Counted from the first letter of the stretch, positions 1-21,300 are shown. The stretch: DNA of 64,000 bases from Vitrella brassicaformis CCMP3155 (GCA_001179505.1 CDMY01000624.1:1-64000); one strand, 5' to 3'. Made by a program: numbers and translations. The notes: generated by a model not told the origin, from the sequence alone.

Positions 1-362
1 TGACCTGCAGCATCCACACGCAGAGCTCATATATGTGTGGATCTGTGCGCCCTCCCTCCCGCTTACGTACCGTTGCCTTCGTTGAAGCACTCGACTTTGT
101 CGAACGTCTTCCCCTTCTTCGCTGCCAGGTGCATGTTGAGGGCCATCCCCGAGAAGAATTTGTCGCTGAGGACGGCCGGCAGGCCCGCCCTAGCAGCCCC
201 CTGACGGAGCTCCCTCTCGACCCCCTTTGCCGTCTGGAGCACCGGCGCGTCCGCCGGCTCGTCGAAGAGCAGCGTCTTGTTGCCGCCGTGGTCGTTGTAG
301 TTTTCGATGTCATTTCCCGCTGACAGCACCACAGGCGCAAGAGTGTACGCACCGCCAGGCAT
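1..362 (-). CDS. Family A hypothetical protein, copy 1 (5' part; runs off the window start)
   Basis: ATG at 362 (MPGGAYTLAPVVLSAGND...FNEGNG). Exon 1 is 362-71, GTACGT...GCAG intron 70-5, exon 2 starts at 4. Near-identical reverse complement of 15084-15445. Confidence 0.75.
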
Positions 363-398
363 CGAGAGGCAAACGAGCAAAGCAATATCAACGGGGCT

Positions 399-425
399 GA
401 GTTTACAAAAATTCTGAGTAAACTC
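399..425. promoter_or_regulatory. Inverted repeat in the 76-nt gap between divergent A and B1 start codons
   Basis: GAGTTTAC-aaaaattctga-GTAAACTC, a perfect 8-bp stem with an 11-nt spacer. Related TTTAC/GTAAA pairs occur at 9482-9504 and 15021-15041. Confidence 0.45.
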
Positions 426-438
426 TGTGGCATCGAGA

Positions 439-1068
439 ATGAGTGACCGCAATCTCGCCAGGGTCAGCACCAGCAACCTCAATGGCCTGTTTGGGGTGTG
501 GGTCAACGAGGTGCAGGGCCTCGAGGCGTCTGTCGTGGGGGTGTGGCTGTCCAGGCAGAAGGACGGCTTCATCGGTCTTGTCGCCCCTCACCTCCGTGAT
601 GCCTTTGGCATCTTGTGGGACGATACGACCACCACATTGCTGAGTAAGCTGGAGCACAGCCATCGAGCGGAGGTGCGGGTCCAAGTTACCTCGTCGCAAG
701 GTACTGGAGAGAGAGCTGCAGGGGGAGCGGGGAGGCATCGAAGAGCCGCTTCGTTTGTGCATGCAGGGTCTGGCAGGGACGTGCTGTATGCCAGCGCCAT
801 TCGAGACCACTCGGGCGACTGGGACGTCAAGATAGCCGCAGCTGCACTGGCACCCATCCCGGGCTCAACCACCATCCCAGCCATGACGACGATGACCACC
901 ACGCACGAGGCCATCCTTTTCTACGAATCGTGCGAGACGCAGGTCCACAGGGAGGCGCACAGCACGCCCCTCTCTCCCGAGGAGATCCAGGCGTTCATGA
1001 CAACGGTGGCTGGCGGTGCTGCGCAAAATCAAGACGACGGGAATGACCTGGGGGAGACGGGGGAATAG
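439..1068 (+). CDS. Family B hypothetical protein, copy B1
   Basis: ORF 427-1068, first ATG 439 (MSDRNL...), probable in-frame intron 701-766 (GTACTG...ATGCAG). C-terminal DWDVKI...TTTHEAILFYESCETQVHRE...TPLSPEEIQAF matches B2 at 14220-14533. Confidence 0.7.
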   Translation: MSDRNLARVSTSNLNGLFGVWVNEVQGLEASVVGVWLSRQKDGFIGLVAPHLRDAFGILWDDTTTTLLSKLEHSHRAEVRVQVTSSQGTGERAAGGAGRHRRAASFVHAGSGRDVLYASAIRDHSGDWDVKIAAAALAPIPGSTTIPAMTTMTTTHEAILFYESCETQVHREAHSTPLSPEEIQAFMTTVAGGAAQNQDDGNDLGETGE

Positions 1069-1189
1069 ATGTCGTGTGTTTGGTTGTGATTTGCAAGTCA
1101 GCTCTTCAGACACATGTGACGGCGGATGATGCACGAGAAAGTTGGACCACACATACGTGAGGGCTGGGTGACAGCCCGCCGATTTTTTC

Positions 1190-1292
1190 ACGCCGACAAC
1201 GTCGGATGCGTGAGTGAGTGTGGCTGGTGGCAGTAGACTTGTTGGTTGCGATGCGTGGAAGACATGATTGGGTCAATGACTCATATTGAATC
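1190..1292. repeat. Non-coding element downstream of B1, inverted copy of about 13935-14035 (downstream of B2)
   Basis: Shadow ORFs 1106-1294(-) and 13924-14484(+) share ESLTQSCLPRIATNKSTATSHTHSRIRRCR, i.e. near-identical DNA in opposite orientation. Confidence 0.85.
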
Positions 1293-1792
1293 AATCACTT
1301 TTTCGCACGGACATTAGTCAGCACTAATAGTGAAGTGAACGGCGGCGCTGATAAAGACGCACACCCGAAGATGCTCCACCGTACATGTACGCGAGTACCC
1401 ACTCGTCATGCATCGATGCATGACAGACACAGCCAGGCACATTCACCCCTTCCCCGACATCCTCGTACCTACAGCAGGTCAGCTGCATGAAGTGACAGAC
1501 TCAGCCAGACGCGTGAAGACAGCTAGACGGATGAGCCGCCACATACACACACAAAAGCAGCAAACACACACGCGGAGAGTCATGACACAGGAGAGCACAT
1601 GTGTGGCACATGTCCCGCCACCCAGACAGGCAGACAGCCAACAGCGTCACTGACGACCACGCACGGTCACGTAAGACGACGGCTGCTCTGTCAAGGGCTC
1701 CATCCCATATGGCACGGCTCGACCTGCAGCAGGCACTGTGCTCATTGACGCATGTGTGGAATGCATGTGTATTGACGGGTTTCACCTGGGGT

Positions 1793-4700
1793 CTAGTTTA
1801 TGGCATTCGGGGGAGGTGACGCCGCTGCGGCCGATGCCGATGGCGTGGTAGTTGGCGCCGTCCCCGCTGCTGCTGCAGTCGGTGCATTCACTTGCGCCTG
1901 TTGCTGGTGGAGCCCATGCAGGAAGGGGTGGTGCCCATGCAGCTGCGCAATGGGCGGCCGTGCAGCGAACATAAAGAACGGCATCGAAAGGGCCAGTTGC
2001 GCCTGTTGCGGGTGAAATGGCATGGGTGTCATGAGTTGCGGAGCAGCCGACGACGGGAGCAGCATGGTTGGTGCGTTGGATGCCGTGGGTGCCATGAATG
2101 GCGGGGCAGCCGACGACGGGAGCAGCATGGTTGGTGCGTTGGGTGTGGTGGACCACCACTGCTGCGAAGGGGTGGGTTGGTGCGTTGGGGCGTCACCCGG
2201 GCCCTCTGAGTAGGGAAACGGCACAGGGCAAACAACGTCCTGTATGCAGCATTTGTGTATAGAGGGCTTGTGCACCCACCTGCTGCAGCATTAGAGAGGT
2301 CTGGGCTGGTAGCTTCTTGAGGGGGTGACTGGATGAATCCAAAGACGAAGCAGAGATAAGCAGAGGTGCCAAGGTGCAAGCTTTTGGATCAGTACCTGCC
2401 CCGGGATGGGGGGGCCCTGGCTTTGGTCATGGATCCCCACAAACCGCTCAGACGCTGCCAACCTATCGGTCAGTTCCGCCCGCGCCACACCCCATTGTGG
2501 CTGTGCGTTTTGCTGGAATCTCCTCATCATCGGCTCGGGCTTGACATGGGGCATCTGCATAGAGTCGTCAGCTGGCCTCTGTGTCCGGCGCCATCTCCTC
2601 ATCGTCGTCTCCACGTCGCTGAGTCGTGCACCAAGTGCACAGCGGAGGACGTCAATGCGGACACTCACGAAGGTCCCTTCCAACTCGACCCATGCCACAC
2701 TCGCACGACCGACAGCAACCAGAATGGCATCTGCACACACGCACAGACACAGAGAAATAATGCATGCACACCGACCGCCAGTTCCCTTCTCGTTACCTGT
2801 GTGGCCTCCACCGCTGTACACTTTGCTGTAGGTCGAGTGAGGGTTGCTGCAGGTCGAGCGAGCACCCCTCACTGCCTCTACGGTCTTCATCATGGTCTCC
2901 CTCATGCTGCTCGCCATGCCCGTCCAGAAGTCCTCAGTCAGGTGAGGGAGCTCCACACGGCTGAACTGGTTGACCAGCAGATTCTTCAAAGAGTCGAAGG
3001 GAAGCTTCTTGACATCGCACAGCTCCCACTGCAGCATTGCCGCTTGATGGTCCTCCCCGAAGCCCACGACCAGCCGATCGTCCGCCGGGCCGTACATCTT
3101 CACTTCCTCTTCTTTGCAGAAGAAAATCGGGTGAGCGTAGCCCAGGAGGCGAGCGGGCTCCCCCTCGCACCCCGACTGCTGCAAGACGCAGATGCGAAAG
3201 GCGCAAGGCACCCTCTCAGGGCCACGGCGCTTCGTCCTCTCGATGGGCGTGCTTCTCTCCTCCCGTCGCGTGAAGTGCATGTCCGACTCCCCCAGGTGCA
3301 AGATGACTGTCCGATCCGACCGCTTCACTGGCTTCACTGGTAGGTCGAAGCCGAGCTGAGCGCCATGTGGGACAACGCGTCCCGTGAGAAGCTCGTACCG
3401 CACTAGGATCCATGTGCCGGTGACGTCGGGCAGTGGCCGCTCAACCTCCAGCTGATGGCCGTTCTGCCCTCCCTGCAGAAAATAGCAGGCCGGGCTGGCG
3501 ACGGGGGTGGCAGCGAAAGGGACGTTGAGGACGTAGAGGATCTTGTCGCTGACATTCTGCAGCTGCTCTCCGACGATCTTCAGCAGCTGCGGCCGGTTCG
3601 CAACGGTGCGCAGCACCTGCATCACATACGTACACGCGGAACACCGCAATCAATCGATGGTGCCATTGTGATGTGGGCGAGTGCTTGCCTGGAAGTTCTG
3701 CTGGAGGAAGGCAAGCGTCGTGGTCTCGCCGTGCTCATATCCACTGGGTGATTGTGTTGCTGGTACAGCTGCACTGGACGCGCTGGCGCTCACTCGAGGC
3801 CTCTTTTGCGGCGGCTCGTTAGAGCTGCCCGCACCTTCGGCGGCATGCACCACCTGGCAAATGACAGACACACCACACAATACACACACACACACACACA
3901 CATATGCGTGACACCGGCACCGATCTCTGCAGTTTCCTTTCGTGCACGCAGCCACGCACCGGTTGTTCCTCCTCCTCTTCCTCGCCCCCTGGTCCCTCCT
4001 GCCCCTCCTCATGCTGCAGCTGGTGTGCTGCAGCAGCTGGCTGGTCAGCCGCCATGCCCACGTCCTCCGGGTCGTAGAGGAGATACTTGATATTCTGAAC
4101 AAAGACGCGGATGCATACGCACTCGTCATCACCACACGCGTATCTTCGAACCCTCTCTTGTACAAGCACTCACCTCCACACCGATGGAAAGCTTCTCGCC
4201 GGTTTGCAGGTATCGCACTTTGACCTGAACGAGTAAAGAGCGTCTCTCTCTCTCCGTCTGTCTGTGTGAGTGCCGGTGCATGTATATATGCGGTATACCA
4301 GCCATCTATCGCGCTCGGGCTCTTCGAGCACCTCCACGTCGTAGAAGCCATCCTCCTCACCATCCTCCTCGCCATCCTCCTCGAAAAGAGACGTGACTGA
4401 CATTCTCATACCTGGTCCGCACCATCAGCACACACTCACTCACTCACTCACACATTCTCTCACACACACGGAGAGAGAGATTCTTCTGATATCTTGCCTT
4501 TTTTGACTGTCTCGACTCGAGGGGGCTCGCGACGGAGCGCGTGCTCCTGCGGTGAGACAAAGGCTGCTCTTTGGTACACATCTGCAGACAGGCGGCAGAG
4601 GCCAGCAAGAGTCCCACACTCACCCACACCAAGATGCAACGCTGCGTGATGCCTCTCACCGCTCGCGAACAGTGTGGCGGCAACCTGGATGCGCTGGATT

Positions 4701-4920
4701 GGAGTGTCCAGCTCCACGGTACACGTAGTGCCATCGGTGTTGACGACGGTCCCGTTCCACCAGCACCCGCAGATCACGTAAGCCGGAACTTTCTGTCCCT
4801 GCCATTTGGCGTCCGGCGGACGACTGAACGCCAGCGCACAAGCAGCACACGTGAGCCAGAATATGGTTCTGTGGGCTGCACCCACCAGAAGACTTGCACG
4901 CGGACTCCCTTGCTCAGCAT
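1793..4920 (-). CDS. Multi-exon hypothetical protein with N-terminal Agenet/Tudor-like segment, acidic stretch and low-complexity C-terminus
   Basis: Spliced N-terminus MLSKGVRVQVFC-RPP...GCWWNGTVVNTDGTTCTVELD resembles a Tudor/Agenet barrel. Long coding exon at about 2870-3620, stop at 1793, internal repeat NAPTMLLPSSAAP x2 at about 2030-2145. Confidence 0.55.
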
Positions 4921-5504
4921 GTGGCCTCCCTATTCGCTGCGTCGTGGGAAGCGAAGATCTCCCAAGGCAAGATCTTCAAGCTCGCACAGGAAGCTGCAAA
5001 GAGGCGCTGCTGCGAAGCTGTAAAGAGGTCCCCAGGGAAGCTTCCCCTTAATCCCCACATTGGAGTCACAACAGACAGTCGAAGATGCGCTGGGCCCTTG
5101 ACTAGGCTGCATACATAGATACGGCTGCCTTGCTGTGCCAGGCGTGCATTCACAGCTTCATCTCGTCAACACGTGGAAAAGCCGATGGCCGGCTCCCTCC
5201 GCTGCGGTAGAGGTGGATGGCAGAGGCGGATGCACTCTCTTCTCTCTTCCCCGCTGACCTCATGGGCAAGACTGTCGTTGCACAGCGGTTCAAACACTCT
5301 ATCACTCATCACCAGTCGTCGATGGGATAGCTGCTGAGTCACGGAGACCACCCAGACGGATAGAGGCATGAGAGTGTTGTGGAGCTAAGGGAGGAGCCGT
5401 GCTGTATCACCACAAACTCACAGATCGGGTGGGTGGCTGTGCGGGGAAACACACAAATGCACCGACACAACACACGAGTGTTTCTCTGCCTGCCTGCCTG
5501 CCTG

Positions 5505-5545
<41 letters not shown>

Positions 5546-5546
<1 letters not shown>

Positions 5547-6752
5547 CTACCATCCGTTTCGTGAGGGCGTCATGCCCTCATGGGAAGACGCCGAAAACAG
5601 AGAGGGTACCTACCGCACACAGACAACACACACACACTCTCATGGCCCCGTCATTGCCCTTCATCTGTGTGTGCAGGTGGCCGTTTGATCGTCAAAGTGC
5701 CCAAGGACATCACTGCGGCCATCTGGGAGGACATGGTCAGTCAGCGTTACAGTGAGACGGCCGGATGGCTTCTGTGCATGTGTGTGTGGGGGCGGCATTT
5801 GTAGGTGTTGGCGTTGATCGGTGAGCAGTTCCAGACGGAGGACCCCGACGAGATCTGCGGGGCCGTCATCTCTGTGCGCCGCGGGGTCAGCACAACAGCC
5901 AACCACCCGACACACAGACATACACACCTGCCTGGTGTGGTGTCTGTTTCCCATTGCTTCAGGAGGACTCGTTGTCTCTGTGGCACAAGAGCAGACGCCG
6001 GAAGTCCACGACCAACTCATGTGTGTGAGATACCCAAACACACACATGGGAAGGCATCTTGCTGTCTATGTCTGTCTGTGTCATCAGCGAGGCGTTGAAG
6101 CGCGTGCTTCGTCTGGGCGACAGCTTCGCCATCGACTGGCGAGAGCACTCCAAGTACTGTATGCACACCAAGCATAGGCACACGGGGAGCCCTCACACAT
6201 TCACATGTTTCTCCGCCCCTGCTCGCCTTCAGGTCTCTGGGTCTGGCCTCTGTCAAGGACAACCGCAGCCGCCCCACCCCCACGCCCCCCAAACACGGCG
6301 ACAATGAGCCCCCCATCCCGCCAGGCGGCATCGAGCTCCCGCCCAGAGACACACTCGACGACGACCGCCGAGCCCGCGACATGATGCGCGACAACAACAT
6401 CGGCGGACAGCGATATGGTGGCGGCGGGGGGCGGTTTCCACGCGGCGAGAGGGTGGGGGGCGGCTGGCGAGAGGGGGAGGGAGAGGGCAGACGCCCTCCC
6501 CCCGACCGCAAAGAGCCGCCCTTCAACCGTCCGAACCGCCTGGCCTCCTTCGACACCCACAATGAGGCCGAGCCGACGCCGCCCAGCTCGGCCAAACACG
6601 CCCTCGGGGCACCGCCCCCGCCACGCCCTGTTGGTCTTGGTGGTGGGTGGGGCAGGGGCAAGGTGCTGCGGCCTGGCGGGATTGGCCGTAGAGGGCCAGA
6701 GAGGGCGACAAGGGGGACCACAGAGACGAGGAGTGACCGAGTCAGTGAGTGA
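5546..6752 (+). CDS. eIF4E: eIF4E-family cap-binding protein (C-terminal two-thirds) with a long Pro/Arg/Gly-rich tail
   Basis: Exons encode DYHPFREGVMPSWEDAENREG / GRLIVKVPKDITAAIWEDM / VLALIGEQF...EICGAVISVRRG / EDSLSLWHK / EALKRVLRL...IDWREH, the canonical eIF4E motif order, with GT-AG introns. No clean 5' exons found. Confidence 0.85.
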
Positions 6753-7619
6753 TTTGAATGCTTCTTGGGTGGCTGTGTAAGGTAGCCGAGGGGAGGAGGG
6801 TTTCAATTGAATGGTTGCGGCGTCTGTTGTGTGGGCGGTTGCTGTGTTGGTGGCTGCTGCTGCATTCCGGGAACAGCTGCGATCGCCGTATGCCTCCACG
6901 TGTGTGGCGATTGAGGATGGACTTAGAACGTCGAAGCGGCCGGCGACACAGACAACTCGAGAAGCGGGCTTAGTAGCCCGCCAGACAGACAGGCTTAGAG
7001 GACTTCTGGTGTGTTTAACTAACGGCCGCTGGCGTGGCAGGAGTGCGTCTGTGTACATCGATCGGGATGTGGACTGACTGCATATGGCTGTCCATGGCAT
7101 TGATGAATCGCAGCATCTATGGCGCAAGTCGATCAGCGGTCCACACTCCACACGCACCACACATTCAAATCGTCAGGCAGGCAGGCATCCGTCCGTCCGT
7201 CCGTCCGTCCACTGATGCGACACTCATGAGGGACACACACTGACATGAAATGCCCACACACCCACGTGAACTCCCCTGACCCTCATGTGTGCCCCGCCCC
7301 GCCCCAGCCACCGGTCTGTGTCGTCACTGTCTCTCTCGACTTCACTGCCCCGCTGAGAAACTCCACCCCCTCCACACACACACACTCACACACGAACAGA
7401 GACACGAGTGGTCGGCACTAGAGGCTCCACGCTTCACGTGCAGCCTCTGATGCCGACAAACCCGCCACACACAACAGTCCTTCATGCAACCACACGCGAC
7501 ACAAACTGCCCAGATGTCATGCCACATAGTATCAGAAACTGCCTGCCCTCCTCCTGCTTTCCCCTTCTGTCTCACCCTCCCGTCAACACCCACACGCACA
7601 CACTTGACAGCCTCTGTCC

Positions 7620-7637
7620 TCACATGCGCTTGTGCCT
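7620..7637 (-). pseudogene. 3' remnant of another family A copy (...RHKRM*) abutting the gap
   Basis: Reverse complement AGGCACAAGCGCATGTGA is identical to the inferred last codons of the family A copies at 15962-15979 and 17447-17464. The rest would lie in the N gap. Confidence 0.55.
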
Positions 7638-7937
7638 NNNNNNNNNNNNNNNNNNNNNNNNNNNNNNNNNNNNNNNNNNNNNNNNNNNNNNNNNNNNNNN
7701 NNNNNNNNNNNNNNNNNNNNNNNNNNNNNNNNNNNNNNNNNNNNNNNNNNNNNNNNNNNNNNNNNNNNNNNNNNNNNNNNNNNNNNNNNNNNNNNNNNNN
7801 NNNNNNNNNNNNNNNNNNNNNNNNNNNNNNNNNNNNNNNNNNNNNNNNNNNNNNNNNNNNNNNNNNNNNNNNNNNNNNNNNNNNNNNNNNNNNNNNNNNN
7901 NNNNNNNNNNNNNNNNNNNNNNNNNNNNNNNNNNNNN
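7638..7937. other. Assembly gap (300 N)
   Basis: Run of N. Gaps of identical length occur at 16352-16651, 22075-22374, 27359-27658 and 34543-34842, so 300 is probably a placeholder size. Confidence 1.
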
Positions 7938-8694
7938 CGTTTCAATTGATTGGTTGCGGCGTCTGTTGTGTGGGGGGTTGGTGTGTTGGTGGCTGCTGCT
8001 GCATTCCGGGAACGGCGAGCATCGCCGCGTGCCTCCTCATGCACACGTGTGTGGCGATTTGAGGATGGACTTGGAACGTCGAAGCGGCCGGCGACACGGA
8101 CAACTCGAGTAGCGGGCTTAGTAGCCCGCCAGACAGACAGGCTTAGAGGACTTCTGGTGTGTTTAACCAACGACCGCTGGCGTGGCAGGAGTGCGTCTGT
8201 GTACATTGATTGGGATATTGGCTGACTGCATATGGCTGTCCATGGCATTGATGAATCGCAGCACCTATGGCGCAAGTCGATCAGCGGTCCACACTCCACA
8301 CGCACCACACATTCAAATCGTCAGGCAGGCATCCGTCCGTCCGTCCACTGATGCGACACTCATGAGGGACACACACTGACATGAAATGCCCACACACCCA
8401 CGTGAACTCCCCTGACCCTCATGTGTGCCCCGCCCCGCCCCAGCCACCGGTCTGTGTCGTCACTGTCTCTCTCGACTTCACTGCCCCGCTGAGAAACTCC
8501 ACCCCCTCCACACACACACACTCACACACGAACAGAGACACGAGTGGTCGGCACTAGAGGCTCCACGCTTCACGTGCAGCCTCTGATGCCGACAAACCCG
8601 CCACACACAACAGTCCTTCATGCAACCACACGCGACACAAACTGCCCAGATGTCATGCCTTCTGCCGGGAGGCGATGACCACAGGACTGCATTG

Positions 8695-9433
8695 TCACAC
8701 AGGCAGAGGATTCTCCGTCAGGTTGTCGAGGCCCGAGACCCTCAAGTACTCCTGCTGGTGTCGGGCCGTGATGAGGGCCAGATGGGCGGGCGGCACGGGA
8801 CTCGCGGGGTGCACCTCGTCGACATGGTGCACGTCTTCGTGGCGGTGGCCCCATCGCTGGCGCCAGAAGAGGATGGTCCGTCTAATGATTCGGGGCAGCA
8901 TGGATGGCTTGAGGACGTCGATGCGCACCACCACGTCGCACTGCCCATTGGCCGTCACGCAGAGCTTGTAGCGGGCGGCGGCACACACGGGCTGAGCGCC
9001 GCTCATCCAAGCCGACTGAAGTGTGTACACACACAGCCACGGGAAATACGCATCCAAGCCAGATGACCCAAAAGGTGTGTGTGTGTGTGCGCTGACCTTC
9101 TGCAGGCTCGACGACGTCCCATGTGTAGCTGGTGCCCTCGACCAGGGTGTATGGGACGATCTGGGTGAGGACGTCGGCACCGAAGACGGCAACGAGCTCC
9201 TGCGCCTTGAGCCCCTGGGTGACGATATGGGCGGTGATGTCGTTCAGCCATGCGCCAGGCAGCTGTGGGGCACCAGCCGTGTCGCCCAGCTGCTGCACGT
9301 TGAGCTTGACAGCCTCGAATGTGGAGGCGTTCACCAGCCATGCAGGCTGGCGGTACCAGAAGGTGCAGTCGATGGCCTTCGGGCCGTCTTCCTGAATTAC
9401 ATCCCAATGCAACTGGCGCGAACCCGACGGCAT
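8695..9433 (-). CDS. Divergent family A member (A'); possible frameshift or pseudogene
   Basis: MPSGSRQL start. Exon 2 GQCDVVVRIDVLKPSMLPRIIRRTILFWRQRWGHRHED...EYLRVSGLDNLTENPLPV aligns with family A GRIDAIIISYGITKRVVKTTTVTWHQR...GHRHEN...AYLALLNNSNLNAGPQLPV. The obvious intron 9096-9016 puts this block out of frame. Confidence 0.6.
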
Positions 9434-9547
9434 GGTGGTGTGCTGGTTGGTCTGCGCGCAACTGGTATCCACGCGAAAGAATTTACTGGTCACATGGCTG
9501 TAAACACGGCAGCCTTGACTTGCAACCAACCGCGACCTGTTTGAGTC

Positions 9548-9985
9548 ATGCACGCTCCCGATCTCAGCGGCGATGAACTTGTTCGCCTGTACAACTCCCC
9601 GGTGCTCTCCGTCCAGCTGGTCTCTCGCCCCAAGCACGGCATCGGCAACATCCGACTTCCCAAGGAGGTCATGCCGCCGCCCAGCACGTCTTCTGAGCCC
9701 GTCATCATCAACGCCCACGAGGCGGTGATCGTCACAACACCAATGGGAGAGTTCCTGATTGAGAAGGGCAGCGGCTACGGATCAGGAGGGGGCAACACCA
9801 TTGTCAAGAAGGTCCAGCATATGAACAAGGCGCAGTGGACATTTGGCGAGGTGAGGACCGACATCGCGGCTGGAGTGACGGTGGGGCAGCTGGTGCACCA
9901 GGGAGGCACCGAGTACCGCTTGTTCAGCAACAACTGCCAAGATGCAGCAGGACGGATCATGGAGCATGCGACGGGGAGCAAGTGA
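9548..9985 (+). CDS. Permuted papain-like (NlpC/P60 superfamily, LRAT/PPPDE-type) protein, intronless
   Basis: 145-aa ORF with His strand (AHEAVIV), LIEKG, and C-terminal YRLFSNNCQD resembling the Y-x-L-x-x-N-N-C catalytic-Cys motif of LRAT/PPPDE proteins, with His before Cys as in the permuted fold. Confidence 0.7.
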   Translation: MHAPDLSGDELVRLYNSPVLSVQLVSRPKHGIGNIRLPKEVMPPPSTSSEPVIINAHEAVIVTTPMGEFLIEKGSGYGSGGGNTIVKKVQHMNKAQWTFGEVRTDIAAGVTVGQLVHQGGTEYRLFSNNCQDAAGRIMEHATGSK

Positions 9986-10448
9986 AGGACGATGCGGAGA
10001 ATGAGTGTGTATGATGGACGTGTATGTGTTGCGTGTGTGCGAGACTCTCCTTTGTCAACAAGTGAGTTACGTACTAAATGATGGCCTCAAGTAGACAGAC
10101 ACTCAGATATGCATTTCTGTGCAAATCACATCATCAGCAACAAAGCATACCACTCAGCCCTCTCGCTTTCCCTCCCCCCACCGCAACACACACTCGCCGA
10201 CTACAATCGTCCGTCCAGCGATGCACGCATAGGCTGCCACCAAGAACTTTCCCGCGACCTTCCCGCTGGAAGGACGAGCCTGATCACACACGTGCACGTA
10301 GCGGTTGTCATCCCAGCTGGCCACACACAAACACACCACACATGATGACATCACACCGCACAAACGTCCCGCTGTCCCGTACCGGTACAGCAGATAGAAT
10401 ACTCGTCAAACTCGGGTGTTGTGTGGTGGACTGGCGGCATGTGCGTAC

Positions 10449-11800
10449 CTCTTTTTTCCTTTTTGTTGATTTGTATGCGTCTGAAGCTCTCCTCCTCTAT
10501 CTGCTGCCTTTCCACCTGCCGCCTCATCAGCGCGGCCGCCTTGGCGTCACGACGCAAATCGGACCCGCCGACCTCCTCAGGCACCTGCAGCCAGACACAG
10601 ACACACAGACACACACATGAATAGGAGCACGTGTGTGTGTGTGTGTGTGTGTTTACGTCGGAGATTTCTTGTCTGAGTGAGCGGACGTATTCGGTCTTTT
10701 TGAGCCTCTCCCTCTGCCTGTCCGCCTCGCGATGCGCCTTGGCAGCTGCCGACAACTGAGACAAGACAGCCATGGCACATGGGAGGTCGACAATAGCCAA
10801 CCGCTGCATGCCGTGCTTTTGCTGTGTGTGCGCACTGCACGTACGTGGTCGCCCGTGTACTCGACAGCCAGTAGCTTCGGCGGCTTGTAGACGCCCTTGG
10901 CAGCCACCTCTCCCTCTCCCTCTCCCTTTTCCTCAGGGACTTCCCCTTCGCCCTCCTGCTCATCGCTCTGCTCCATTTGCTCTTCGTCGGCTTCATTTGG
11001 GTTCATCAGCTGGTCCAGCCGGGGCCTCAGCGGCTGCGCAGCCTCACTGGCCGCCTCTGACATACACACACACACGTGTGAGTGGACCGATTTCGTTGTT
11101 GCATGTGGGGTGGGTGCATTGTGTGTGGGTGAGTCGAGTCACCTTGGATTGGTTTAGCGGCCATGTCGAGCAGTCTGTTGACCTGGTAGGCCAGGCGCTG
11201 GTCGATGGGGCGCATCTTCTCCATCAGAGTGCGCAGCAGCACCAGCTCGTCGACCACGGGGTGGGGGCTGACCGACGCACCCTTCACCTGAACCACATCA
11301 ATCAGAACACACGTCTGTGTGTGTGTGCGTGATATGGATGGATGGCTGACCTTGAGCAGCGTGTAGTACGTGAGGTAGATGGTGTAGGTCAGCAACAGCT
11401 GCGCCTTGACGTCGAGATACGAGATGCCCTGACACACACACATGCACAGACACAGGAGGTGATATCTATCTGCCTCTGCCCCTGCCTCGCCATCCCTCTC
11501 CTCGCTCGCCCACCTTGTCCACATGAATGCTGGTCCCATCAATCGTCTCGTTGAGCGACTCAAGCTTCTTCCGCAGACTCTCAGCCTTCCCCTTCACAGC
11601 TCGCCAAGCGCACTCAACACATCCTCGTCAGCCACATCCTCACCATCCACACGCAGCAGCTCATCCCTGCTGCTGCCCTCACGTCGAGAGGAGTGGGATG
11701 TGCCATCTGGCGGGGCAGCGAAGCGGCGGAGCGCCTCATAGTCCACGAGCGGGTCCTCGACAGCATCTCTCTCGGTGTCCGCGTGATGATCTCCATTCAT
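10449..11800 (-). CDS. NGDN: Neuroguidin / Lcp5 (Sas10/Utp3/C1D family); 3' end unresolved
   Basis: GISYLDVKAQLLLTY...HPVVDELVLLRTLMEKMRPIDQRLAYQVNRLL, PLRPRLDQL, GVYKPPKL, VPEE and RQQIEEESFRRI are all characteristic of NGDN/Lcp5. Confidence 0.9.
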
Positions 11801-12069
11801 CAGCTCGGTTTGCGGGTTCAGTTCAGGGCGCTGGCAAGGTCTCGGAATCGCCTTAGGCCATTCCTTCGCGAGGCGTCATGATGATCGCTACCTAATCTCG
11901 CACTCCCAAAAGACACAATCGTCGCCTGGCAGGAGTCAAGTTGTTTACAAGTCCACGTTGGCCGAAAGAAGCTGAAGGGTGAAGCACACGATCACAAACG
12001 TGAGCGCGTCACATCAGATACGCAGCAACAGATCAGTATGAGCATGTGTTATGTGTGTCGTTATGCAGG

Positions 12070-13353
12070 TCATCCATTGCCAATGCCCCGTTTCGTGGGA
12101 CCATGCTACGAGGTGATTTGCTCGCCTGGCGGTGATCTGGTGCCGGGCAGCTTCAATGTCTTGACTGCGGGTGCCATGTTCTCCCTCACCACTACCGAGG
12201 TCTGCAATCTTTCCAGCAGCGGCGTTCGAGACCTCCTCCTTTGCGAGTTCACCTTTGGACGCCTTCCTAGCGATCTGCAGACGGACACGTTCATCGAACG
12301 TGTGGCGGCCGACGTCGAATGTCTTGCTAGAAACTGTCAGGACTGTTCCCAGCTTCGGCGCGACATCGTGAGGCGCACGAGCACAGCAAATGACGGGCGA
12401 ACAAGTGTGTGAATGTGCCTCGGTTCTGCTGTGTGGTGGTCTAGGCATCCGTCCTGCTATCTCAATGGAAGCCTCACCCGCAGATGAGTGGCAGTGGGCA
12501 GGTACATGTGAGTGATGTGGAAGCCGCTGCAACGCATCATCAAGACACCTCTGCGCTGTCTCGCTCTCAGGGCTACCATCTGCAGCCGGCAGCCGACGCA
12601 CAGACGGGTGAGCGGCTGAGAGAAGGCCATGCGCGAGTGCACGCACTCGCATGGCGCGCTTTCTATCGATTGGCCCATCTGTTTTGTGTGTTGCTGTGTG
12701 TCAGATGTGAGAGTGTGGGTGCCGAGTGCGAACGAGGCTGACGTCTTGTCCAAGGCTGAAGAGAAGAATATCAACGCTCGTCGCATTCCTCTGGACGAAG
12801 CCGGAGAAACCCCACCAATGGACTACTGCGTCTGCATTGAGATGAAAGGTCAGCTAAAACACACACACAGACGCAGCCCATTTACTGCATCTGCACATCA
12901 CACATGCCTGGTCAGGTACGACACAGTCGGTCGTGTCTGAGCTGCTCAAGAGCAGCTATCTCGTGGCTGAGCTGCTCAACAGCAGGTATCCCGTGTTGCT
13001 TCAAGTCGGCCATGCAGGCGGTGCGCAGCCTGCCCGTTTGAGCGATGCATTCGGTTACCACGAAGATCTCAACGACGACAATATCCATACGCTCACAGTC
13101 ACACACACTTCCCGCTTGTTGTGGCATGCTCACATTATGTGCATACTTGCTTGTGTCGCGTGTTGTGGTACATTCAGGTACAGGGTGTTGTTTAGTCGGC
13201 CGCAGCCAGCTCACCAGGGAGGACACAATTGTCGTACGGTGTGATGTCATCCGGTTCAGATATGCCCTCACCAACATGATGAAAAAAAGAACCACCGTGT
13301 TCTTGATCCGTCGAAGGCATGCTTTTGGCAAGGTCAGCTATTGTGTGCAGTGA
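12070..13353 (+). CDS. Possible multi-exon hypothetical gene, or degenerate gene
   Basis: Several moderately coding-like ORF pieces (12038-12412, 12705-12850, 12933-13100) separated by GT-AG-like introns. No motif recognised. Confidence 0.3.
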
Positions 13354-14219
13354 CATGAGTGTTTGCACATCTTCCCGTGCGTGCATTCATTAGGTCTCCT
13401 GCGAAGAGGAGAGAGAGGAAACCTTCTTCGAGCAGCCTTGTAGTATGCCCTCGGATTCCACCCGAGCCTATCTGACAGCCATCCGAGGCGCATACGCACG
13501 TCTAAAGGATGACCGCAACTTAACCAACGGCCCCGCCCTCCCGGTGCGCATAGGAAGACAGGCCCACACACATTCAAGGAGAGAAAAATCGCACGGGTGT
13601 CTTCTGTGTTTGGTTGCAATAGGCGCCAATTCCTCCCATCCCCCCTATTGACTTCAACAGCACCATTCATTCATCTGACGGGCGTCCGCGAGCATCTTGG
13701 TTTCATTCCGAGAGCCATTGATTGAAGTTGAATGCTGTGTTGCTACGCCGCAGCTGCCACTAAAGCACGGTTTGATGTATGTGTTAGCGAGTGTTGCTCG
13801 CTAGATGTGGCATTCTTTGTTGGACAGTGCTCCACCGTTGACTGCTGCTTTGTGTATGCCGGACTGTGACTGCGTATGTGTGTGGAGTGCTTGCTTATGA
13901 ATCAGACGAAATGATAGATACATGTGTGCGTCGTGAAAGAGTCATTGACCCAATCATGTCTTCCACGCATCGCAACCAACAAGTCTACTGCCACCAGCCA
14001 CACTCACTCACGCATCCGACGTTGTCGTGCGCGAAAAACTCAGTCGACTTTCACCCAGCCCCCACGCACAGCTCCATCGCAGCCATACATGCATACTGCC
14101 TGTGACACAGACACGTACAGACCAACGACCGCAGCACTGCAGCACTCACTGCGCGCACTCATGCAAACTCCCCTGACACGCACGCACGCACCCTGGCCAC
14201 AAGACAGTCAGGCATCACA

Positions 14220-14988
14220 TCATTGCTGGCCATTCTGCAGTGCCGTGACTGCCCACTCTTCAGCCGTCAGCCCCTGCTGTCCGGCGCCGCTGCCCATACC
14301 GACGACGGTGGCGAAGAGGGCGCCGACTTCCTGGAGGGTGATGGGCGTGTTGAGCATCTCCTTGTGCACCTGCGACTCCGACGATTCGAAGAAGAGGTTC
14401 TTCTCGTGCGTGGTGGTCGTCCAGAAGCGATATGTGGGAGGCTTCTCGCAGGAGAAGCTGATGGCCTGGACGGTGACATCGTAGTCGTCGTCAGCTTGAC
14501 GCACGATGCGCAGCATGTAGCCCGACGCAGAGCCTGCAGACAACGACACAAACACCCCACCGCGATGTACTGTACACTTGTTTCTCCCTCTCTTGTGGCG
14601 TCTACTCACCATTGGGCGTCGCATACGCAAACGATGCGTTCATGATTTTCGTTCCGCGGCGACCGATGAGGCGGATGTCCTCGTTGAGCATGTCTTTGAG
14701 TGCGTCTACTGCACTGTCGAATCTCGCCAACTGCTGAGGCGGGATCTCCTTGCGGAGCGCCTTGGCCTGCTTGGCGCACCAAGTCGGCACACAGGCACCA
14801 GACAGCCCCTCGACTTGATTGCTGAAGTTTCGCAGGCTGAGGGTGTTGAACGAAAAGAGGGGTGGAACCACCAGGGAGCCGGCCTCCGTCCGCTGGTGGC
14901 GCGAGGCGATGGGCTGGCCGTTCTGCCAGAAGGACTTGATGCCATCGAGGACGGCATTCTGCGCAGCATTCGAAAGGGAATCAGACAT
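14220..14988 (-). CDS. Family B hypothetical protein, copy B2
   Basis: ATG 14988 (MSDSLSNAAQNAVLDGIKSFWQN). Phase-1 intron 14609-14534 (GTGAGT...TGCAG) at the same position as in B1. Exon 2 DDDYDVTVQAISF...TTTTHEKNLFFESSESQVHKE. Confidence 0.75.
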
Positions 14989-15083
14989 CGGCGGACGGAA
15001 GGGCCAGCCGAGCTACCGAATTTACTCAGAATTTTTGTAAACTCAGCCCCGTTGATTGCTTGCTCGTCTGTTTGCCTCTCACG

Positions 15084-15979
15084 ATGCCTGACGGTGCGTA
15101 CACTCTTGCGCCTGTGGTGCTGTCAGCGGGAAATGACTTCGAAAACTACAACGACCACGGCGGCAACAAGACGCTGCTCTTCGACGAGCCGGCGGACGCG
15201 CCGGTGCTCCAGACGGCAAAGGGGGTCGAGAGGGAGCTCCGTCAGGGGGCTGCTAGGGCGGGCCTGCCGGCCGTCCTCAGCGACAAATTCTTCTCGGGGA
15301 TGGCCCTCAACATGCACCTGGCAGCGAAGAAGGGGAAGACGTTCGACAAAGTCGAGTGCTTCAACGAAGGCAACGGTACGTAAGCGGGAGGGAGGGCGCA
15401 CAGATCCACATATATATGAGCTCTGCGTGTGGATGCTGCAGGTCAGCTGCTGATTGCAGACGGTCGCAGTGAGAGCGTCGACGGCCGTGTCAGGGGGCGC
15501 GCATCGACGCCATCATCATCTCGTACGGTATCACCAAGCGTGTGGTCAAGACCACGACGGTGACGTGGCACCAGAGAGAGACCCTCGGCTTGATCAGGGG
15601 CCACCGCCATGAAAACAACCATGTCAACATCCAGGAGACGGCCTGCACCAAGCTCAACGGCGAAGCACAGGCACACCTCACCAAGATCAAGGGGGCTTAC
15701 CTCGCCCTCCTCAACAACAGCAACCTGAACGTCGGACCTCAGTTGCCGGTGTGTGCCAACGCCTTCATATCGACCGGCGGCATTCACGCACTCATGGATG
15801 TCTTGTGTCTCTCCTTTCAGTAGGTCCCTGTCGCCCAACGCCCCGTCATCCCGATACACCCGGCGCAACGTTCTCCTCTGCCGATCGTCATCACCGCAGC
15901 CGGCGCACGACATGGCCTGAGTTCACCACCAGGCGGCGCGGCACTGGCACTGGCACTGATGAGGCACAAGCGCATGTGA
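15084..15979 (+). pseudogene. Family A copy with a 2-nt insertion (frameshift) in exon 2
   Basis: Exon 1 is 15084-15375, intron 15376-15441. GGGGGCGCGCATC here versus GGGGGCGCATC in the 16652 copy shifts the frame and gives an early TGA near 15560. A sequencing error is also possible. Confidence 0.65.
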
Positions 15980-16651
15980 GGACAGAGGCTGTCAAGTGTG
16001 TGCGTGTGGGTGTTGACGGGAGGGTGAGACAGAAGGGGAAAGCAGGAGGAGGGCAGGCAGTTTCTGATACTATGTGGCATGACATCTGGGCAGTTTGTGT
16101 CGCGTGTGGTTGCATGAAGGACTGTTGTGTGTGGCGGGTTTGTCGGCATCAGAGGCTGCACGTGAAGCGTGGAGCCTCTAGTGCCGACCACTCGTGTCTC
16201 TGTTCATGTGTGTGAGTGTGTGTGTGTGGAGGGGGTGGAGTTTCTCAGCGGGGCAGTGAAGTCGAGAGAGACAGTGACGACACAGACCGGTGGCTGGGGC
16301 GGGGCGGGGCACACATGAGGGTCAGGGGAGTTCACGTGGGTGTGTGGGCATNNNNNNNNNNNNNNNNNNNNNNNNNNNNNNNNNNNNNNNNNNNNNNNNN
16401 NNNNNNNNNNNNNNNNNNNNNNNNNNNNNNNNNNNNNNNNNNNNNNNNNNNNNNNNNNNNNNNNNNNNNNNNNNNNNNNNNNNNNNNNNNNNNNNNNNNN
16501 NNNNNNNNNNNNNNNNNNNNNNNNNNNNNNNNNNNNNNNNNNNNNNNNNNNNNNNNNNNNNNNNNNNNNNNNNNNNNNNNNNNNNNNNNNNNNNNNNNNN
16601 NNNNNNNNNNNNNNNNNNNNNNNNNNNNNNNNNNNNNNNNNNNNNNNNNNN

Positions 16652-17464
16652 AACAAGACGCTGCTCTTCGACGAGCCGGCGGACGCGCCGGTGCTCCAGA
16701 CGGCAAAGGGGGTCGAGAGGGAGCTCCGTCAGGGGGCTGCTAGGGCGGGCCTGCCGGCCGTCCTCAGCGACAAATTCTTCTCGGGGATGGCCCTCAACAT
16801 GCACCTGGCAGCGAAGAAGGGGAAGACGTTCGACAAAGTCGAGTGCTTCAACGAAGGCAACGGTACGTAAGCGGGAGGGAGGGCGCACAGATCCACACAT
16901 ATATGAGCTCTGCGTGTGGATGCTGCAGGTCAGCTGCTGATTGCAGACGGTCGCAGTGAGAGCGTCGACGGCCGTGTCAGGGGGCGCATCGACGCCATCA
17001 TCATCTCATACGGTATCACCAAGCGTGTGGTCAAGACCACGACGGTGACGTGGCACCAGAGAGAGACCCTCGGCTTGATCAGGGGCCACCGCCATGAAAA
17101 CAACCATGTCAACATCCAGGAGACGGCCTGCATCAAGCTCAACGGCGAAGCACAGGCACACCTCACCAAGATCAAGGGGGCTTACCTCGCCCTCCTCAAC
17201 AACAGCAACCTGAACGCCGGACCTCAGTTGCCGGTGTGTGCCAACGCCTTCATATCGACCGGCGGCATTCACGCACTCATGGATGTCTTGTGTCTCTCCT
17301 TTCAGTAGGTCCCTGTCGCCCAACGCCCCGTCATCCCGATACACCCGGCGCAACGTTCTCCTCTGCCGATCGTCATCACCGCAGCCGGCGCACGACATGG
17401 CCTGAGTTCACCACCAGGCGGCGCGGCACTGGCACTGGCACTGATGAGGCACAAGCGCATGTGA
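16652..17464 (+). CDS. Family A copy, tandem duplicate (5' end hidden in gap), exon 2 intact
   Basis: NKTLLFDEPADAPV...FNEGNG / GQLLIADGRSESVDGRVRGRID...NAGPQLP / probable last exon VPVAQRPVIP...ALALMRHKRM*. The 3' flank diverges from the other copies after about 17700. Confidence 0.75.
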
Positions 17465-18123
17465 GGACAGAGGCTGTCAAGTGTGTGCGTGTGGGTGTTG
17501 ACGGGAGGGTGAGACAGAAGGGGAAAGCAGGAGGAGGGCAGGCAGTTTCTGATACTATGTGGCATGACATCTGGGCAGTTTGTGTCGCGTGTGGTTGCAT
17601 GAAGGACTGTTGTGTGTGGCGGGTTTGTCGGCATCGGAGGCTGCACGTGAAGCGTGGAGCCTCTAGTGCCGACCACTCGTGTCTCTGTTCGTGTGTGTGA
17701 GTGTGTGTGTGAGGGGGCGGATTTTCTTGGCGGGGCAGTGAAGTCGAGAGAGGCGGTGACGAGACACACCCGTGGCTGGGGGAGGGGAGGGGCACACATC
17801 AGGCCAAGGGGGGACAGTCCATGTGTGGTGTGCTTGCGTGTGTATCTCATGTCAGTGTGTGTCATGACGGGAACAATCGAAGTACGTTTCAATCAAATTC
17901 CATCACTCGCTTGCTCCATCCTCGGGAGCCCTCTGATTGGCTGACCATCAGACAGCGAACATGCATTCACACACCGACAGACTGAACGCGTTTCCATTTA
18001 TCGGTATCGTGTATGGTCAATCGCGGTCTCAATTTCGGTCTCTCCGTCCCTCCCTCTATTGCCTATTAGCTCAGCCTATCCACTAGCTAATCTCTACATC
18101 GCCACTGTCATCTCACGAACGAC

Positions 18124-20003
18124 TCACCACTTGAGTCGGTCGCCAAACTCGAAATTGGAGTTGCCCTCGTCAGAACTCTCAGACGAGTCAGACCACCCGG
18201 TGCGCTCCATCCTTCCCTCCCTCCGTCGGCTCGCACCACCACCACCACCGCCGCCATTCGGCCACCAATCCCACCCCCCAGCCCCGCCAAACAGCCACGA
18301 TCGTGGGATCCTATCATACAAAGCCACGTCTGTCTCTCTTTCGTCCCCCTCCCCAGCCTGCGTGTCGCTGGCAGGTGGGGGGCGGGGCAGAGACATGAAG
18401 GCCGAGAGGATGCTGTCTCTGTCTCTGTCTCGCTGCTGCGTGTCGTCCGTTGTGGCGCTTCGCCGCAGCTGCTGTGAGTGCCTGCCTCGCCGTGTTGTGC
18501 GGGGCTCGGAGGAGGGGGAGCTGTGTGCTGGCGGCCGGGGGCGGGAGGAGGGATGCCTGTGACGCTTGGAGGTGCGGCGGGGAGGGATCGGTGGACGCTC
18601 ACCTGACCGAGACACACACGCCGAGGAAGATCGATCAGCCAGCCAGCCAGCCAGCCACCAGAGATCACCTTCATCCCTCTGACCTTTGCTCTTTGCCTTC
18701 TGATCGGCCCTGTCGATTGGCACAGGTGTGGTCCAGTCGGTGCGATAGGTGGTCAAAAGCGGGTCGTCGCTGTCGTCCAGCAGCCCGCGTGTGCGCGCCC
18801 GGAGCGACTCGGATGACGATGACTGTGCTGTCTTGTCACTTGACCATGAGCTGATGGAGAGAGTGCGCTGGTGGGTGATGCACGAGTCGCAGAGGGATGG
18901 GGCGGGAGGGCGAGAGCGGGACTGACGACGGCGGAAAAGCATTGTGAACAAGGGAAACGGCTGACACCAGGAAAGGGGCAGGGAGAGGTCTCCGTCTCTG
19001 TGGTGTCCCTTTGTGTGTGTCTTGCGTGGTCCATGTTATGTTACCTTGCGAAGGACGAAGGCAAAGTAGATGCAGACAGCGATGAAGACAATCAACAAAG
19101 TGGTGCAGATCTGTGTGTGACCAGAGAGAGACACGTCAGACACACGCACCATCATCCATCCCCTCTCCGCCTCTTCACCCATGCTGCGATGATGACAGCG
19201 TCGTACGTCCTGCAGATGGCCTCCGTGTGGCACCGACCATGGATGACGCATGCACACCTCGTCGCCCATTGGCCGTGCTGCGGGCTGCCGTGCGATTCGC
19301 CCCTCATTTGCACAAAGTGTGACCCTCTTCCCCTGTGGCAGCTGGGGTGCTCCATGCGGAAGAGGCCACGGGCCTTGCACAGCAGAGCCCTCACTGCATG
19401 GGACACAGGGTGTCTCGCCCCCGTGGTGTCTCTGATGAGTTGGTCGTCCTCAGTCTCGGTTTCCGCGAAGGTGGGCGGCTCTTTCTTCAAGTTCAGAATC
19501 CGCTGCTCTCCGTCCTTCTGCTGCGCCGTTTCCCCCTCCTCAGTGTGTGTCTTGCCGTCGCTCTCAACCCACGTCTGTCTCACCGAGCCCTGATGCTCGT
19601 GCGGGCGAAACGACAAAGGGGAGTCGCTCGACGACACGCGGAACGGGGCCTTGTTGGCGTTGGTAATCACCCTCCGCCGCTGGCCGTGGAACAGCGCTTG
19701 TAGCAGGACATAGGGCGGCTCCTCAGCATCCATGTGCGCCAAGGAGTAGGGACGCACCGGGGAGAGGGAGCCATCCGAAGGCTGCACGGACACCTCGCGA
19801 GAGTTGTCGTCAGCAGGAGAAGGACGGGGCTGGCTGCGGAGCACGAAATGGGCCGACAGGGGGTTGCGAGAGGCGGCGGGGCCCGGTGCTGCATCATGAT
19901 GTTGCCGCCGGTCTTCGTGTCCAGGTTCCACAATGGTGATGAAGCGGCAGAAGAGGAGAAGCACGAGGGCCGGTTGGTGGTATCGATGAATCCTCATTTG
20001 CAT
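18124..20003 (-). CDS. Low-complexity (Ser/Arg/Pro-rich) hypothetical protein, possibly with an N-terminal hydrophobic segment
   Basis: Overlapping long ORFs 19152-20003 and 18124-18951 joined by GT-AG introns; N-terminal ALVLLLFCRFITIV; no recognised domain. Confidence 0.45.
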
Positions 20004-20288
20004 GTCGCCTTGAGGATGGAGAGAGAAGGTCGACGGTTACAGAAACACCCTTATCGCCAAACAGGGCGGAGAAAGCTGGAGGGCAAGAGAGGGGATGATC
20101 ATCTTGCGAAACTCGAAGGAGCCACAGCAGTCTCGTCAAAGAGCGTCCATCGTCGGCCCCCACAAGCGCGCATGTCGGGGGGAGAAGAAGGGGCGCGTTC
20201 TTCGGCCCATGGACTCATTTGCTTTCGTCCGGATGACGCGGGCCCAGGAGGAGAGCAAAGGTGAGCCCCTGGATGGACGGATGCATTC

Positions 20289-20844
20289 ATGGTGGCATGC
20301 TGGCTGCTGCTCTGCGCTGGGAGGAGGATGCATGCGAAGAAAGGCGATTCACATTGCAGAACGGTCCTTGCCTTGCTGTTTGTCTTGCTGTTCATCATCA
20401 TTCCGTCAGGTTTGGCGCCCTCCGTGGATCAGTTTTTCAAGGATGCATCCTCTGTGGCCACGAGTGCCCAGTGGCAGCAGGTGCAGTACAAGTCCTCCCA
20501 CACATCGCAGCAGTCGACGTCGAGCGATGACGGCCACACAGACAAAATCGGTGAGCAGCCAGGAGAAGGAAGAGGCGCAGGCGCGGCGGCGGCGGGCTGA
20601 TTTCCTTTTTTGCCATCTAGATGCGGAGGAGCTGTTTCGATACATCGAGTGGCGGTTCGGCATCCCCATGCCGCGCGCGTATGGCCCGCCCATCTACCGC
20701 CCCGTGGTGATGACGGGAGCTGCCGGCAGCAAGTACCAGCAGGCGGGCATGGGGGCGGGGATGGGCGTTGGGGGACACGCTGCTGCCACCACCTATCACA
20801 TCTTCAAACGCACACAGGGTGAGACCGACACTACGGCTGACTGA
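20289..20844 (+). CDS. Small two-exon hypothetical protein with a hydrophobic segment
   Basis: TVLALLFVLLFIIIP, GTGAGC donor at about 20551, TAG acceptor at about 20619, then AEELFRYIEWRFGIP...TTAD*. The start codon is uncertain. Confidence 0.45.
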
Positions 20845-21300
20845 AGGGCCTAATTGCGGTAGTGTGCGTGTGTGTGTGTGTGTGTGTCATGCAGGGCAGG
20901 GATAAGTGAGGGTAATGGGTTGGCGGGTGACAAAAGGGGATGTACGGCAGAGGGCAGAGGCGTGTACAGTAGAGTGCGGTGCAGGCAGGTTGGGGTGACA
21001 TGACAGCGTGAATATGTATGGCATGCTCAGGTAGACAGACAGACACCCACCCACCCCACTCCACCACACCACCGGCCTCCAATGGTTCATCAAGCAAGAC
21101 AGACACATAAGTCTGCGTCAGTCTGTGTGCACAGGCACACACATGCCATGCGCCCCGCGCACGTTTGTACGTCCATCTATTGACGTATGCCTGCCTGTGG
21201 GTATGTGTGTGTGTATGCGTGCGCGAAAGACCTACTCGACAACACCCACAAAATGAATGCCATCCATCCATCCACCCACCCAAGTGCCTCCCTCGATCAC

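Follow-up and report, generated by a model that had tools for sequence, protein, structure and literature searches.

Toxin–antidote and effector–immunity pairs are known from bacteria as polymorphic toxin–immunity systems and from eukaryotes as the selfish wtf and peel-1/zeel-1 genes, and bacterial papain-fold toxins paired with immunity genes are also known. Multigene families with conserved flanks, divergent gene bodies and ectopic gene conversion have been described as well, for example the subtelomeric families of Plasmodium. In Vitrella brassicaformis, the median intergenic distance is 92 bp and closely spaced genes are enriched for head-to-head orientation (PMC4501334). We analysed the first 64 kb of scaffold C624 of V. 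brassicaformis CCMP3155 (the window), in which a first-pass annotation, made from the DNA alone, had described at least five copies or remnants of a gene family, A, three of them locked head-to-head with a partner gene (B1, a papain-like gene and B2), and had proposed that each pair acts as a two-component module. The genome searched throughout was the 72.7-Mb assembly of 1064 contigs.

Overall, we consider it fairly probable that this is a Vitrella-specific cluster produced by local segmental duplication and then partially homogenized by gene conversion. The paired genes and the remaining A copy are as follows.

1-362 (-): A1, the 5' part of an A gene at the scaffold start (exon 1 71-362, intron 5-70, ATG at 362)
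439-1068 (+): B1, split into two exons by an in-frame intron of 66 nt near 700-767; annotated protein P0001, 187 aa
8695-9433 (-): A' (exon 1 9116-9433, intron 9016-9115, exon 2 8695-9015); annotated protein P0002, 212 aa
9548-9985 (+): papain-like gene, single exon; P0003, 145 aa
14220-14988 (-): B2 (exon 1 14610-14988, intron 14534-14609, exon 2 14220-14533); recovered as exact unitigs over 13998-15050 in two culture runs
15084-15917 (+): A2 (exon 1 15084-15375, intron 15376-15441 of 66 nt, exon 2 from 15442), with the exon structure of the annotated A3 protein P0004
16652-17402 (+): A3, an intact A frame from codon 28 (intron 16863-16928), annotated as the 5'-truncated P0004, 153 aa

Splice sites were based on the annotated proteins P0001, P0002, P0004 and P0005 together with the sequence; spliced models were searched exon by exon, and full-length proteins only where the database returned them. 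Contigs from four read sets contained no intron joints, and no run recorded as RNA contained the stretch.

The A copies fall into one closely related set plus more distant relatives. Within the window, self-comparison revealed that 1-435 is the reverse complement of 15009-15445 (96.4% identity), that 1-281 is the reverse complement of 16652-16932 (100%) and that 15165-16320 matches 16652-17803 at 97.9%. Because the copies at 1-362, from 15084 and from 16652 thus share 96-100% mutual identity, three of the five proposed copies constitute a single recent duplicate set; across the genome, exon 1 of A occurs in three places and exon 2 in two. The first-pass annotation had placed its copies at the right coordinates and counted too many of them, as A1, A2 and A3 form this one set and the remnant at 7620-7637 is not a gene; it is 18 nt of a 388-nt non-coding repeat that flanks the 3' end of A2. 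A2 itself carries a 2-nt insertion near 15497, which breaks a reading frame kept by A3, A' and a further family member, A''' (see below), and the annotated A2 model (P0005, 179 aa) omits 51 residues, avoiding the frame break. The insertion is present in contigs from the culture runs, the A3-type form appears in a sediment metagenome, and A2 is probably a decaying copy.

Family B has two members in the whole genome, B1 and B2, which are paralogous in exon 2 only (39% over 82 aa, E 1e-10). They are unalignable as DNA, although the flanks on both sides are 93-96% identical, with homology breaking off 4-21 nt before the ATG of the B genes and 90-150 nt past their stops. The repeated flanks are listed here.

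1156-1282 (unstranded): flank downstream of B1, 93% identical to the flank downstream of B2 at 13939-14066
6800-7637 (unstranded): Repeat X, of which 7250-7637 resembles the A2 3' flank and 6800-7523 matches 7939-8659 at 94%
8386-8659 (unstranded): 3' flank of A', 99.3% identical to the A2 3' flank at 16076-16351

The part of Repeat X at 7250-7637 (388 nt) is the reverse complement of the non-coding segment 15962-16351, the sole difference being a 2-nt indel in a GT run. Since homology is retained on both sides of B (93% and 96%), the B–A pair was duplicated as a unit, which bears out the earlier suggestion that the pair is what was copied. That duplication would be old, given that B1 and B2 share just 39% identity, and this in a single exon. 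Homogenization or re-copying would later have brought the A side and the outer flanks to their present 93-99% identity, after which A2 would have acquired its frameshift. In this scheme, A and A' would each start, together with their neighbour, from a short shared bidirectional promoter of the kind usual in the compact Vitrella genome. The most economical account of the identity pattern would thus be a set of old paralogues whose flanks, and in one case also the A gene, were later homogenized by gene conversion or re-copied.

The same mosaic could instead mark a diversifying, recognition-type locus, in which flanks stay near-identical and cassettes (B1/B2, A'/A) are driven apart in an idiomorph-like manner, with B1 and B2 perhaps representing alternatives of one position. 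The abrupt loss of DNA similarity within 4-21 nt of the B starts would fit such a locus, as would the contrast between the 99.3% identity of the A' and A2 3' flanks and the ~31% identity of their proteins. The differences among A copies are also mostly non-synonymous: both of the two that separate A1 from A2 in exon 1 and, as we read the alignment, two of the three in exon 2. Against this, collinearity between the B1-bearing and B2-bearing contigs ends with the short flanks, so the two are not simple alleles; B2 has the unitig depth of its single-copy neighbours (45 versus 46-50 in run X1); there are just two B forms; and old paralogues with converted flanks give the same pattern without selection. 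We therefore regard a recognition locus as improbable and retain duplication followed by conversion as the preferred explanation.

The count of A genes also depends on how the start of the scaffold was assembled. Positions 1-22074 consist of three contigs, c1 (1-7637), c2 (7938-16351) and c3 (16652-22074), separated by gaps of 300 N.

7638-7937 (unstranded): assembly gap with the flank repeat on one side and another repeat copy on the other; the join is doubtful
16352-16651 (unstranded): assembly gap with non-coding DNA downstream of A2 on its left and codon 28 of A3 on its right

Both gaps lie at repeat borders, neither is readable across, and the contig ends dovetail with other contigs. Specifically, the first 155 bases of scaffold C138 (1-155) are the reverse complement of 7939-8093 (100% identical), the end of c2 overlaps the start of reverse-complemented c1, and reverse-complemented c1 ends with the same 281 bases that open c3 (a suffix–prefix overlap). 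These overlaps suggest reversed C138, c2, reversed c1 and c3 as the simplest order, on which A1 and A3 would be a single gene paired with B1 and lying in tandem with B2–A2. A1 is probably the missing 5' end of A3, and contig 1-7637 was probably mis-scaffolded, as it fits inverted into the gap at 16352-16651. Rough unitig depths in run X1, which are not copy numbers, put the A1/A3-type contig at 69 and single-copy B2 at 45, and this ratio of ~1.5× fits two A copies, not three. The copy number of A has been overestimated because contig ends are repetitive and the beginning of C624 probably contains a scaffolding error that inflates the tally.

Taken further, the gaps at repeat borders and the dovetailing ends could mean that there is a single locus with one B–A pair, of which the repeated A–B units are uncollapsed or wrongly joined versions, and the contigs of four out of four read sets indeed differ from the assembly at positions 15983 and 15990. 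Several observations make an artefact of this kind highly unlikely. B1 and B2 are genuinely distinct genes, each of them found in read-derived contigs, B2 as exact unitigs and B1 as a joint from 14027 to 15021 (which we read as the B1-bearing copy on the shared flanks) plus a loose end at 15021. The A2-type and A3-type 2-nt variants are both found in reads, and A', A''' and A are clearly distinct sequences.

As a separate observation, the contigs of all four read sets, the metagenome included, read A at both 15983 and 15990, where the assembly has C and T; the letters read there are seen in none of the assembled repeat copies.

We next turn to the divergent arrangement. The spacers between start codons measure 76 nt for A1 (ATG 362, -) and B1 (ATG 439, +), 114 nt for A' (ATG 9433, -) and the papain-like gene (ATG 9548, +) and 95 nt for B2 (ATG 14988, -) and A2 (ATG 15084, +), exactly as first described. 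All are shorter than the 1 kb between divergent starts used to define a bidirectional promoter. The caution attached to them at the outset, namely that short divergent spacers also occur elsewhere in the window, holds for the whole genome, given its median of 92 bp and its enrichment for head-to-head genes (PMC4501334). Furthermore, two of the three pairs are copies of each other, leaving two independent pairings (A with B, A' with the papain-like gene). With so few pairings in a genome where this orientation is common, the arrangement alone is not evidence of a module and is not beyond expectation in Vitrella.

The content of the spacers is more specific than their length, since each contains a bipartite motif.

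401-425 (-): GAGTTTACT-N9-TGTAAAC, with one mismatch, in the B1–A1 spacer
9479-9505 (+): GAATTTACT-N11-TGTAAAC, in the A'–papain-like spacer
15018-15042 (+): GAATTTACT-N9-TGTAAAC, in the B2–A2 spacer

In its exact form (GAATTTACT-N9/11-TGTAAAC), the motif has two copies in 72.7 Mb, both within the B2–A2 and A'–papain-like spacers, which are otherwise unalike. It ends at a similar distance from the start codon of one gene of each pair (41 nt for A2, 42 nt for the papain-like gene and 38 nt for A1). A two-block match as good arose in 7 of 5000 shuffles and 13 of 4865 random genomic 114-mers (~0.001-0.003). TTTAC and GTAAA, the two half sites, make up an imperfect palindrome, and given this symmetry the orientation of the motif may be without importance; a further word, AGCTCGCA, was absent from all three spacers. 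A shared, locus-specific TTTAC...GTAAA element suggests that the three promoters are probably homologous and bound by the same factor, and by extension that the paired genes are probably transcribed together. Co-regulation, as originally proposed, is thus plausible through a motif common to the three spacers.

The papain-like partner is the cluster protein for which a biochemical activity can be suggested. Two genomic paralogues of its gene lie on C305 and C506, and His57 and Cys130 (the latter in an 'NC' motif) are invariant in all three sequences, with His preceding Cys. In an AlphaFold2 (AF2) model with a predicted local distance difference test (pLDDT) score of 55, a helix at 129-142 opens at the 'NC' motif and places the Cys at its N-terminal end. 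Matches to described families were weak. The Pfam family PPPDE (Peptidase_C97) was hit below threshold by one of the three paralogues (E 0.17, 12.2 bits versus a cut-off of 29.2), Foldseek with the AF2 model returned no match, and a papain-family profile searched against solved structures gave nothing relevant. VIA-align ranked TseH (Z 3.9), DeSI-2 (3.7), Aichivirus 2A (3.6), CLN5 (3.6), PLAAT4 (3.6) and YiiX (3.3) among its matches; scores overall were Z 3.0-3.9, each over 73-113 residues, which is below the level at which the tool is reliable and was obtained with a query model of pLDDT 55. Among its longest alignments (at least 90 residues), 8 of ~12 were to permuted-papain proteins, picornavirus 2A included. 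These features suggest that the protein is probably a Cys–His enzyme of the permuted papain fold (LRAT/PPPDE-like), and the name 'papain-like' is plausible but not established.

Neither paralogue of the papain-like gene has an A neighbour; each closely follows an unrelated gene in the same orientation. At both loci (C305 4985-6483 and C506 3836-6460), the paralogue directly follows a conserved gene without a Pfam match. On C506, the papain-like and upstream reading frames abut and may be one gene, and a second, convergent copy of the same conserved gene is also present.

Family A extends beyond the near-identical set and is defined by a C-terminal domain of ~100 residues with conserved RID, W.QR, GHRHE and AYL...NL..GP.LPV motifs. 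Its members comprise four to five sequence types within ~17 kb: A (two copies), A', A''' and probably A''. The copy originally reported at 8695-9433 is a true relative, A', though a distant one, with homology limited to the C-terminal exon (BLASTP E 2e-6, 31% over 89 aa); the first exons of A and A' show no detectable likeness (E 0.13). The other members, and a possible relic of the papain-like gene, are given below.

2552-2749 (-): A'', a probable but borderline, distant A-type domain at the C-terminal end or last exon of a longer gene, open reading frame (ORF) 2294-3649
12038-12412 (+): possible decayed papain-like relic, weakly supported, with an 'FTFG...NCQD' stretch that lacks the His; in tandem upstream of A'''
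12629-13549 (+): A''', a further A member with an extra intron; A domain in exons ~13192-13344 and 13391-13549, start uncertain

A''' was recognized by collinear profile matches (last exon E 1.4e-5, preceding exon E 0.11), by tblastn (E 1e-4) and by a match in the genome search. It lies tail-to-tail with B2. Its GC content at third codon positions (GC3) is 0.62-0.67, compared with 0.75-0.84 in other genes, and because of this low value it may be a decaying copy. For A'', a two-sequence profile gave E 4.3, and an enlarged A-domain hidden Markov model (HMM) gave E 0.011, the best match of any non-member; A and A' both align to the same segment within ORF 2294-3649 (-), which has a good coding signal (GC3 0.80 in its first part). 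Upstream of A''' we found neither a convincing gene nor a copy of the bipartite motif. Its nearest neighbour would be a divergent Sas10/Utp3-family gene ~0.8 kb away, a reading based on homology to C138 rather than on a defined gene start.

Between the pairs lies this Sas10/Utp3/C1D-family gene (~10350-11850, -; Pfam E 2.9e-12), which has a second, 90-94% identical copy on C138 (4516-5886). The ORF at 12038-12412 (GC3 0.62) matched the papain-like protein by BLASTP (E 3e-4), in a pair picked by eye; the papain-family HMM gave no match, and it was rejected as a paralogue.

An A-domain profile searched against 1.84 billion cluster representatives recovered only P0002, P0004 and P0005, all from Vitrella, and the genome contained no A or B loci beyond those listed. 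In Pfam, no A, B or papain-like exon or protein had a significant match, nor was there any F-box match up to an E-value of 10. When B1, A' and the papain-like protein were used as queries in word-based protein searches, each retrieved only its own Vitrella protein, and no contigs encoding P0001 were on record. Structural searches were similarly empty: A and B had no match among the sequences of solved structures, no look-alike of P0001 or P0002 in the ESM Atlas reached 0.9 (Atlas models, pLDDT 0.34-0.36), and an AF2 model of A' built with two paralogues was unusable (pLDDT 34). Thus, the profile and structure searches run with A and B (Pfam, solved structures, Atlas) produced no match, and both families are without recognizable biochemistry. 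A candidate relationship between the two as distant paralogues was rejected (hhalign probability 0.1%, E 0.44; BLASTP of P0002 versus P0001, E 0.19; B missed by the A-domain HMM). No signal peptide or membrane helix was found in any of the proteins, all of which are small and soluble and appear non-secreted, and this speaks against their being secreted effectors or toxins.

A marine sediment metagenome from 2025 (run X9) contained about half of the sampled words of 13900-16351, with an intact A3-type frame and the start of B1 beside A, indicating that a close relative of the sequenced strain occurs in sediment.

Could the pairs nevertheless form a genuine two-gene module kept by selection, in which A works with B or with a papain-like enzyme as regulator or inhibitor with enzyme, or as toxin with antidote? 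In favour of this, all three A genes with a visible 5' end face away from a partner whose start lies 76-114 nt off, a motif common to the three spacers has no exact copy outside them, the B–A pair was duplicated as a unit, and the B1–A arrangement recurs in the sediment metagenome. The papain-like relic and A''' at 12038-13549 offer a possible second adjacency, and the top, though weak, fold match of the papain-like protein is TseH. Set against these points are the two independent pairings, whose partners B and the papain-like gene have no similarity to each other, and A''', which has neither a divergent B or papain-like partner nor the motif. On both C305 and C506, a different, same-strand gene neighbours the papain-like paralogue, A2 is frameshifted beside an intact B2, the proteins lack secretion signals and close head-to-head pairs are the genome norm (PMC4501334). 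Co-occurrence of the two families at independent loci or in other genomes was not seen, A-domain relatives being confined to Vitrella. We therefore judge a selected module unlikely. The more specific proposals of the first-pass annotation (effector plus antidote, bicomponent toxin or recognition pair) are unsupported, with unrelated partners, a partnerless A''' and a frameshifted A2; nothing shows that A needs its partner, and nothing found makes functional dependence likely.

Several points also weigh against the duplication, conversion and shared-promoter account preferred here. Gene conversion is read from a mosaic of identities, and mis-scaffolding from overlaps and rough contig depth; moreover, A1/A3 and A2 differ at one position in the 281-nt overlap, so the 100% match discriminates weakly. 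The bipartite motif was defined after being seen and its halves are spaced 2 nt differently between the two spacer types, and its support for co-regulation is moderate. For the papain-like partner, the fold assignment depends on a low-confidence model (pLDDT 55) and sub-threshold scores. Finally, for the N-terminal exon of A the searches covered the Vitrella genome and Pfam only.

If the preferred account is correct, the cluster illustrates, in a compact alveolate genome, the origin and spread of lineage-specific genes: a gene and its bidirectional promoter would be copied together by local duplication, conversion would keep the flanks alike, and copies such as A2 and A''' would decay. The bipartite element may also offer a way to find a transcription factor and the few genes it targets, in an organism whose promoters have hardly been studied. 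We give little chance to a more far-reaching combination, a private regulon of Vitrella-only proteins with a genome-unique promoter element, conversion-kept flanks and cassettes pushed apart, serving as a diversifying recognition or toxin–antidote system with a permuted-papain partner; if true, it would represent a diversifying two-gene system in a free-living relative of apicomplexan parasites. Functional dependence between the paired genes would in itself make this an unusual eukaryotic two-gene system.

The locus can be compared with several described systems. Like other Vitrella bidirectional gene pairs (PMC4501334), the present pairs are divergent, are separated by 76-114 nt (genome median, 92 bp) and share a short control region; unlike them, their spacers carry a bipartite element of their own, the exact form of which is seen nowhere else in the genome. 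With toxin–antidote pairs, the locus has in common two small, fast-evolving, lineage-restricted adjacent genes that were duplicated together, but here A and B contain no recognizable toxin domain, co-occurrence is not conserved and A2 is broken beside an intact partner. The papain-like protein shares with permuted papain-fold enzymes (the NlpC/P60 superfamily, comprising PPPDE/DeSI, LRAT/PLAAT, the picornavirus 2A H-box/NC proteins and TseH of the type VI secretion system) a His that precedes the Cys, an 'NC' Cys at a helix start and a length of ~145 aa; it differs in that all scores are sub-threshold and its two paralogues are both from Vitrella. The mosaic of flanks at 93-99% identity beside coding regions that are unalignable, or ~30-40% identical as protein, is shared with Plasmodium-type subtelomeric families, whereas the Vitrella cluster consists of a handful of members at one locus, without secretion or membrane signals.

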